The position numbers and the translations under genes are program-made. Below, in pieces: positions 9,270 through 9,355 of a stretch of 64,000 nt of DNA. The stretch covers positions 95,350,024 to 95,414,023 of the forward strand of contig NC_085845.1 of the NCBI RefSeq assembly GCF_035594765.1, written 5' to 3'. The DNA is from Anolis carolinensis. Lineage: Eukaryota. The first letter of the stretch is position 1, and the number at the start of each line of letters is the position of its first letter. The notes under the pieces are model-generated. The model saw only the letters and a program-made list of their open reading frames with translations. It had not been told where the DNA came from and ran no database searches.

Positions 9270-9355
9270 TGCATGTGCCTGCATGTTCAGAAAAATGTGT
9301 TTTCCCCTTCCCTCTGCATTACTAAAGTAAATAATTAAATATGAAGATTTGCATG
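9270..9355 (+). promoter_or_regulatory. Three TGCATG (RBFOX-type) splicing elements in the short intron
   Basis: TGCATG at 9270, 9280 and 9350. Confidence 0.55.

Follow-up and report, generated by a model that had tools for sequence, protein, structure and literature searches.

A conserved trio of UGCAUG motifs in the Piccolino intron of PCLO is a strong candidate for an intronic RBFOX-response element

Introduction

The short intron that follows the giant fifth exon of PCLO carries three copies of UGCAUG, and we propose, from a comparison of vertebrate sequences, that this trio is a strong candidate for a deeply conserved intronic RBFOX-response element in intron 5/6 of the gene. The comparison makes it very probable that the three motifs constitute a selected functional RNA element, and RBFOX is probably its reader. 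The full model, in which RBFOX acts as the switch between Piccolo and Piccolino by promoting removal of the intron, is offered more tentatively, at slightly below an even chance. Retention of the Piccolino intron is itself already known; what is new is the conserved UGCAUG trio as a candidate cis-element for the Piccolo/Piccolino choice.

In the mouse, a 356-bp intron is left unspliced, or a weak internal acceptor is used, and Piccolo is truncated to Piccolino (PMC3735604). Piccolino occurs in cone photoreceptors, rod bipolar cells and inner hair cells, both aberrant forms (retained intron and weak acceptor) are enriched in ribbon cells, and the retention event is supported in mouse and rat by RT-PCR and by an antibody against the tail (PMC3735604). 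A 2026 study reported that Piccolino, the Piccolo isoform specific to ribbon synapses, tethers vesicles to rod photoreceptor ribbons and took the isoform as given (PMC13394108).

RBFOX1/2/3 bind UGCAUG, enhancing splicing from positions downstream of an exon and repressing it from positions upstream of or within an exon (PMC10987577). An earlier note on this DNA, made from the sequence, had proposed such a switch and described RBFOX as abundant in conventional neurons and low or absent in photoreceptors, and on the latter the literature agrees: RBFOX is absent from photoreceptors (PMC4991804), Rbfox2 in the retina is limited to ganglion, amacrine and horizontal cells (PMC7665016), RBFOX was not detected in bipolar cells in published work, and it is low or limited in hair cells (PMC10987577). 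On these expression data, which are from mouse and not from a reptile, the set of RBFOX-poor cells is the set of cells in which Piccolino is found. Photoreceptors also differ from neurons in having less NOVA, ELAVL, KHDRBS and SRRM4 and more MSI1 (PMC4991804; PMC10987577).

The earlier note knew of no description of an RBFOX mechanism for Piccolino, and neither do we: the literature searched yielded no link between RBFOX and Piccolino or Pclo intron retention, no explanation of what determines retention of intron 5/6 in ribbon cells and, with supplements included, nothing on an RBFOX CLIP signal on Pclo. Among papers that name both Pclo and Rbfox, those listed were GWAS or expression lists. 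Pclo is not mentioned in the text of Murphy et al., 2016 (PMC4991804) or of Ciampi et al. (PMC10987577), in the supplements of the former, or in the main text of an RBFOX2 beta-cell paper.

Materials and methods

The window is the whole 64,000-nt stretch of Anolis carolinensis DNA that was analysed, and positions are counted from its first letter. Orthologues were located by word search, using the final 242 residues of the exon-5 read-through frame as query and taking open frames that end in Piccolino-like tails. Closer relatives were located by a second search with the exon-6 frame, and whole introns were taken from their contigs. The comparison set consisted of the window intron and ten other vertebrate introns (11 in total). 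These were L007 and L008, with exon-6 identities of 88% and 78%, which are probably squamates and close relatives; L010, another amniote; L001, a rodent with the tail GQYDIAIDPALKCHYGIVHLVSG; L002 and L003, amphibian-like; L005 and L006, both teleosts, the latter being Dallia pectoralis; and L011 and L004, each from a more distant lineage, L004 with a partial intron and a GC donor. The labels 'rodent' and 'amphibian-like' rest on sequence similarity and on an exact match to the mouse forward primer in L001. A further locus, L009, from a placental mammal with an exon 6 nearly the same as that of the rodent, had two TGCATG at first count and was left out of the alignments and the census.

The hexamer census covered the inner parts of the 11 introns, that is, the introns minus their first 75 nt, which code for the tail, and their last 45 nt, and amounted to 2,797 nt. 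Chance expectations were computed from the base composition of the intron and from the rate across the window, and probabilities from first-order Markov simulation at intron composition. Twenty public sequencing runs cover the stretch; the contigs of four small runs (X2, X7, X13 and X14), whose tissues are coded, were compared with positions 8460-12459. Such contigs show the presence of spliced and retained forms and not their ratios, and a minor cleaved form could be missed.

Results

Borders and reading frames define PCLO intron 5/6 as a 397-nt plus-strand intron (Table 1). It lies directly 3' of the giant exon, and reading exon 5 through its donor adds 23 codons before an in-frame TGA. In translation this tail matches the published mouse Piccolino peptide GQYDVAIDPALNCHYGVMHLVSG, the antigen of the Piccolino antibody (PMC3735604). 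Because of its position after the giant exon and because its tail is homologous to the mouse peptide, the 397-nt intron is the orthologue of the Piccolino intron, which is how the earlier note had named it.

Table 1. Features of PCLO intron 5/6 and its surroundings in the window; a slash marks a splice border.
Feature	Position	Strand	Remarks
Exon 5	open frame 3925-9058	+	up to about 5.1 kb; last letters ...ACGACAG at 9058
PCLO intron 5/6 (Piccolino intron)	9059-9455	+	397 nt, GT..AG borders; flanked by exon 5 and 2.0-kb exon 6
5' splice site CAG/GTCAGTAT	9056-9066	+	C at +3 non-consensus; also codes Gly-Gln of the Piccolino tail
Read-through coding part	9059-9129	+	23-residue tail, then stop TGA at 9127-9129 (from translation)
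Tandem UGCAUG pair	9263-9290	+	conserved block GGTACCTGCATGTGCCTGCATGTTC; copies at 9270-9275 and 9280-9285, starts 10 nt apart
Acceptor-like site: pyrimidine tract and AG (9326-9327)	9300-9327	+	sole internal site passing the scan in the window intron
Third UGCAUG (9350-9355)	9346-9358	+	conserved block GATTTGCATGCAG
Branch-point-like region, polypyrimidine tract and 3' splice site (GGACTATAACTCTGCCCTGTAATTTCAG)	9421-9455	+	57% invariant among amniotes, against 17-26% in unconstrained intron stretches
Exon 6	9456-11461	+	2,006 nt; joined at 11461 to exon 7 start (21262) in contigs of all four RNA runs

The intron starts with gtcagt, and its donor, CAG/GTCAGT, departs from consensus at +3 only. 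The same CAG/GTCAGT is present in nine tetrapod-type sequences having the complete intron; the teleost donors at this intron are GTGAGT and GTTAGT. The exon-5 donor is thus only mildly non-consensus, and the C at +3 is also under constraint from the coding of the tail. The description of the intron as weak in the earlier note therefore holds in so far as the donor is off consensus, but the deviation is confined to a single position. In L004 (1229-1239) the donor of the Piccolino intron is CAG/GCCAGTAT, with GC in place of GT, which is weaker and non-canonical. At the other end, the window intron closes with ...ctgtaatttcag and exon 6 begins with GTGAAATT.

As the earlier note had observed, three exact copies of TGCATG lie within 86 nt on the plus strand, all inside the intron. 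They are 212-297 nt past the exon-5 donor and 101-186 nt ahead of the exon-6 acceptor, so that sense-strand (U)GCAUG stands no more than about 300 nt from a regulated splice site. The plus strand reads ...ggtaccTGCATGtgccTGCATGttcag... at 9264-9292 and ...gatttGCATGcag... around 9350. From the base composition of the intron, 0.085 copies would be expected per 397 nt and about 0.02 per 86 nt; from the plus-strand rate across the window, the figures are 0.23 and 0.05, and the earlier estimate of about 0.1 by chance was a fair one. In the simulations, at least three TGCATG in 397 nt arose with P = 0.0018, and any plus-strand triple within 86 nt anywhere in the 64 kb with P = 0.0135; both values are post hoc, and we take conservation to be the real test. 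Across the whole window and both strands, TGCATG is only in mild excess (67 copies observed, 52 expected). The two variant poly(A) hexamers reported between the motifs, AGTAAA at 9326 and ATTAAA at 9334, are both present. At 9187, where the window has T, all three RNA runs covering the position (X13, X2 and X7) read A; this is a polymorphism or an assembly difference, within the intron but outside the motifs.

The earlier note had named conservation in orthologous introns as a check on its proposal, and TGCATG proved to be present in all ten other introns, from teleosts to reptiles and a rodent, at two to four copies in each (intron lengths 323-461 nt). The tandem pair keeps its 10-nt spacing in L007, L010, L001, L002, L004 and L011 as in the window, and its block can be aligned from teleosts through reptile and rodent. 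The third motif aligns with a TGCATG in L011 and L006, and L005 has a TGCATG in a similar place, 123 nt before exon 6. Where copies have decayed, to TGCTTG in L008, TGGATG in L003 and TGCGTG and TGCGTA in the teleosts, the same introns hold additional sense-strand TGCATG copies elsewhere, a combination of loss and gain that looks like binding-site turnover under selection.

In the census, TGCATG was the sole motif found in all 11 introns, together with its one-base shift GCATGT, and it was counted 31 times against 3.9 expected; all other strongly enriched hexamers were parts of the block GTGCCTGCATGT. The species are related and the counts are therefore not independent, so that the argument lies in letters being kept while the neighbouring intron is unalignable. 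In the alignment of five amniotes, no invariant stretch of the intron is longer than CCTGCATGTTC (9278-9288), and GATTTGCATG (9346-9355) comes next; both equal or exceed the donor run in length. The motif blocks are 68-69% invariant in these amniotes against 17-26% in the remaining inner intron, the tandem block alone reaching 68% against 17-19% in its flanks. The motif is thus conserved above the intron background in 11 of 11 orthologous introns, and by these comparisons the three motifs are the most conserved features of the intron other than the splice sites, across roughly the whole bony-vertebrate span. Sense TGCATG outnumbers its reverse complement CATGCA by 33 to 9, and only three of the nine lie outside the palindrome TGCATGCA; this strand bias suggests a function at the level of RNA.

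Between the tandem pair and the third motif of the window lies an acceptor-like site. Its AG precedes exon 6 by 128 nt and the third motif by 22 nt, and it follows the tandem pair by 41 nt. The rodent intron likewise has a single internal acceptor-like site, flanked by motifs as in the window and 120 nt before exon 6, which equals the distance implied for the weak acceptor of the mouse by amplicons of 439 and 319 bp (PMC3735604). In L007 and L010 the flanked acceptor-like site fails the scan threshold. No joints at AG 9326-9327 were seen in the contigs of the four Anolis RNA runs. The teleosts and L004 carry a strong acceptor-like sequence, cacag/ATGCATG, 1 nt before the first motif. In Dallia pectoralis (CM055740.1; L006, 3866-4224), the gene model DPEC_G00166360 (P0015) splices the exon-5 donor to cacag/ATGCATGCG, directly ahead of the first conserved motif, giving a truncated Piccolino-like protein with a different tail. 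The acceptor-like site used in this model is also present in L005 and L004.

All four runs are RNA in effect, as their contigs leave the genome at 11461 and resume with ACTAAAGGATCTTC..., which is where exon 7 begins; three of them leave intron 6 uncovered, and the fourth covers it thinly. Intron 5/6 was found retained, spliced or in a mixed state. In X2, one 7,583-nt contig (depth 48) extends from exon 5 across the complete intron and through exon 6, with a splice to exon 7, and thus represents a mature transcript that keeps intron 5/6. In X13, contigs of exon-like depth enter the intron for 178 nt on the left and 166 nt on the right, with no spliced joint. In X7 both forms are present: a GT..AG joint that skips the 397 nt (depth 20.5), and a separate contig of the intron at depth 8.5, where the exons reach about 50. 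In X14, the exon-5 contig continues across the same splice, as a loose end, with GAAATTGT, which is exon 6, and 9130-9397 is uncovered. Intron 5/6 is therefore alternatively retained in Anolis, differing between RNA samples, and the earlier proposal of a retained-intron form is borne out to the extent that retention is seen in some runs and splicing in others.

Two further observations concern these transcripts. The retained-intron transcript of X2 meets its stop at 9127-9129, continues through exon 6 and is then spliced to exon 7, and it is therefore an expected substrate of nonsense-mediated decay. In X7, a contig at 11432-11946 crosses from exon 6 into intron 6 at low depth (6, compared with about 46 on exon 6). 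It is unspliced precursor; this run therefore holds some pre-mRNA, and part of its minor retained intron-5/6 contig may likewise be precursor.

Discussion

In our model, RBFOX1/2/3 in ordinary neurons would bind the element, which lies 212-297 nt past the exon-5 donor, and thereby bring about efficient excision of a short intron between two very large exons, yielding full-length Piccolo. Excision would be aided by help to the slightly off-consensus donor and by masking of the weak internal acceptor that the motifs flank. In ribbon cells (photoreceptors, bipolar cells and hair cells), where RBFOX is absent or low, the intron would be kept or the weak acceptor used; where the intron is kept, translation would stop after 23 extra codons to give Piccolino. 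For the mouse, the literature places retention in RBFOX-negative cells, which would speak against binding being the cause of retention. Several points count against the model. The motifs are also situated 100-190 nt upstream of exon 6, a position from which repression would usually be expected, so that the net effect of RBFOX on a short, intron-defined intron is not predictable. The nearest precedent in form and the most fully studied, xol-1 of C. elegans, has the opposite polarity. The flanked acceptor-like site is below threshold in L007 and L010, and the donor deviates only mildly from consensus.

A more modest role is conceivable for the same motifs, namely that they are real RBFOX sites which secure robust excision of a poorly definable intron in neurons and do no more, with retention in ribbon cells being set by other features of splicing in sensory cells, for instance Musashi, SRRM3/4, low NOVA or ELAVL, or slow splicing generally. 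Photoreceptors do differ in many regulators at once (PMC4991804; PMC10987577), and conservation alone cannot part an element that helps splicing from one that is the switch. However, no other hexamer is conserved across the 11 introns, and the inner intron thus offers no visible cis-element for a second regulator; moreover, the pattern of RBFOX absence fits the Piccolino cell types. We consider this role to be somewhat unlikely. We judge it less likely again that the element mainly silences internal decoy acceptors (AG 9326-9327 in the window, cacag/AUGCAUG in fish), with donor enhancement secondary or absent, so that without RBFOX a decoy engages the donor and produces both the alternative 3' site product and stalled, retained transcripts. 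In its favour, the window and the rodent each have one internal acceptor-like site between the tandem pair and the third motif, the rodent site being 120 nt before exon 6 like the mouse weak acceptor, and the teleosts and L004 have a strong site before the first motif, of the kind that the Dallia model P0015 uses; such an arrangement also accords with the repression exerted by RBFOX just upstream of or within an exon (PMC10987577). Set against this are the lack of any joint at the internal AG in the four Anolis RNA runs, the failure of the site to reach threshold in L007 and L010, and the nature of P0015, which is a gene model of unstated evidence.

The remaining readings do without RBFOX or without a switch in splicing. 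The TGCATG copies might serve another role, through an RNA helix formed by the first motif with the palindromic third block (UGCAUG pairing to CAUGCA), through another RNA-binding protein or as a DNA-level element. Being self-complementary, the third block, TGCATGCA, could form pairs with either of the tandem copies, and RNAalifold does propose a helix of this kind, but the fold is no more stable than those of shuffled sequences (z = -0.18), the consensus energy is -3.95 kcal/mol with hardly any compensatory change, and L008, L005 and L011 keep the TGCATG of the third block while losing the complementary CATGCA. RNA structure was accordingly rejected as the main reading of the conserved letters, given the weak fold, the weak helix and the fact that it is sequence and not pairing that is kept, and the strand bias of 33 to 9 argues against non-RBFOX and DNA-level roles; taken together, we hold these roles to be improbable. 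It is more improbable still that an intronic poly(A) site, AGTAAA or ATTAAA, ends the Piccolino mRNA with TGCATG modulating cleavage. Both hexamers exist in the window, but neither is found in L007, its closest relative, or in L008, L010 and L001. The retained contig of X2 reads through exon 6 and joins exon 7 by splicing, so that cleavage inside the intron is not needed, and in the mouse an RT-PCR with its reverse primer in exon 6 amplifies the retained form (PMC3735604). On the lack of conservation in four other amniotes and the read-through in X2 we rejected the poly(A) site, and the suggestion of the earlier note that the intron may be cleaved in ribbon cells finds no support. As for a functionless chance cluster, the triple was picked post hoc and the window has a mild excess of the hexamer; yet the simulated probabilities are low both for the intron and window-wide, and orthologous copies occur in all 11 species within an intron whose surroundings barely align. 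Conservation in practice rules chance out, and we give it a negligible probability.

The switch model can be set beside several known systems. Like the intronic RBFOX elements of vertebrates, the PCLO trio consists of several exact sense UGCAUG copies less than 300 nt from a regulated donor, is deeply conserved and sits in a gene for a synaptic protein; in motif and position, conservation and association with an alternative event, it fits the known class of conserved intronic RBFOX sites, insofar as sequence can assign it. It is unlike the usual elements in that the event is the retention of a whole short intron flanked by very large constitutive exons, with a weak alternative acceptor, and not a cassette exon, in that the state put to use would be the RBFOX-absent one, in sensory ribbon cells, and in that it is a candidate from sequence. 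In C. elegans, FOX-1 acts on GCAUG repeats of xol-1 intron VI to cause retention and use of an alternative acceptor (PMC7787662). The likeness lies in several GCAUG motifs within one short alternative intron and in outcomes, retention or an alternative 3' acceptor, that both lead to premature termination. In contrast, FOX-1 binding causes retention in xol-1, whereas PCLO retention occurs where RBFOX is reported absent, and the gene and biology are unrelated (sex determination as opposed to synapse type).

The closest comparison is with Piccolino of mouse and rat (Regus-Leidig et al., 2013; PMC3735604), where the intron concerned is the same one, the 23-residue tail is homologous to that of the window and likewise ends at TGA, a retained-intron transcript was detected, and a weak internal acceptor has a corresponding place. 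Regus-Leidig et al., 2013 did not address the determinant of retention, and their comparison covered four mammals and only 120 nt at the start of the intron; the motifs described here lie beyond that part, and the conservation reaches teleosts. Finally, the model resembles the photoreceptor splicing programme (Murphy et al., 2016, PMC4991804; Ciampi et al., PMC10987577), where lack of RBFOX in photoreceptors leaves RBFOX-enhanced events unactivated, although those studies concern cassette exons and microexons, unlike the intron retention of PCLO.

The three-motif element provides a concrete hypothesis for the Piccolo/Piccolino choice that can be tested by mutation, and it links that decision to the lack of RBFOX already known from sensory cells. 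Confirmation would make it a clear vertebrate example of intron retention under RBFOX control, with a defined protein product, as well as an experimental handle for isoform conversion. A bolder and more doubtful extension is that two UGCAUG, a decoy acceptor and a third UGCAUG form one Piccolo/Piccolino module in jawed bony vertebrates, and that the absence of RBFOX in ribbon-synapse cells is both necessary and sufficient to turn the gene to Piccolino. Were this true, a major structural contrast separating ribbon from conventional synapses would be set by loss of an activator and not by a factor specific to sensory cells.

Intron 6 of the window offers some minor observations of its own. Very many short, deep contigs (depth to several thousand) from three of the four runs fall on about 130 nt at 12103-12238 and continue into sequence that does not match, which has the look of a dispersed repeat transcribed at many loci. 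A plus-strand open frame of 299 codons at 13770-14669 may be a transposon remnant or an unannotated exon. A second plus-strand TGCATG triple, with copies at 20437, 20486 and 20530 (span 20437-20535, 99 nt), lies about 730-825 nt upstream of exon 7, with a fourth copy at 20923, and may be another RBFOX element of PCLO.
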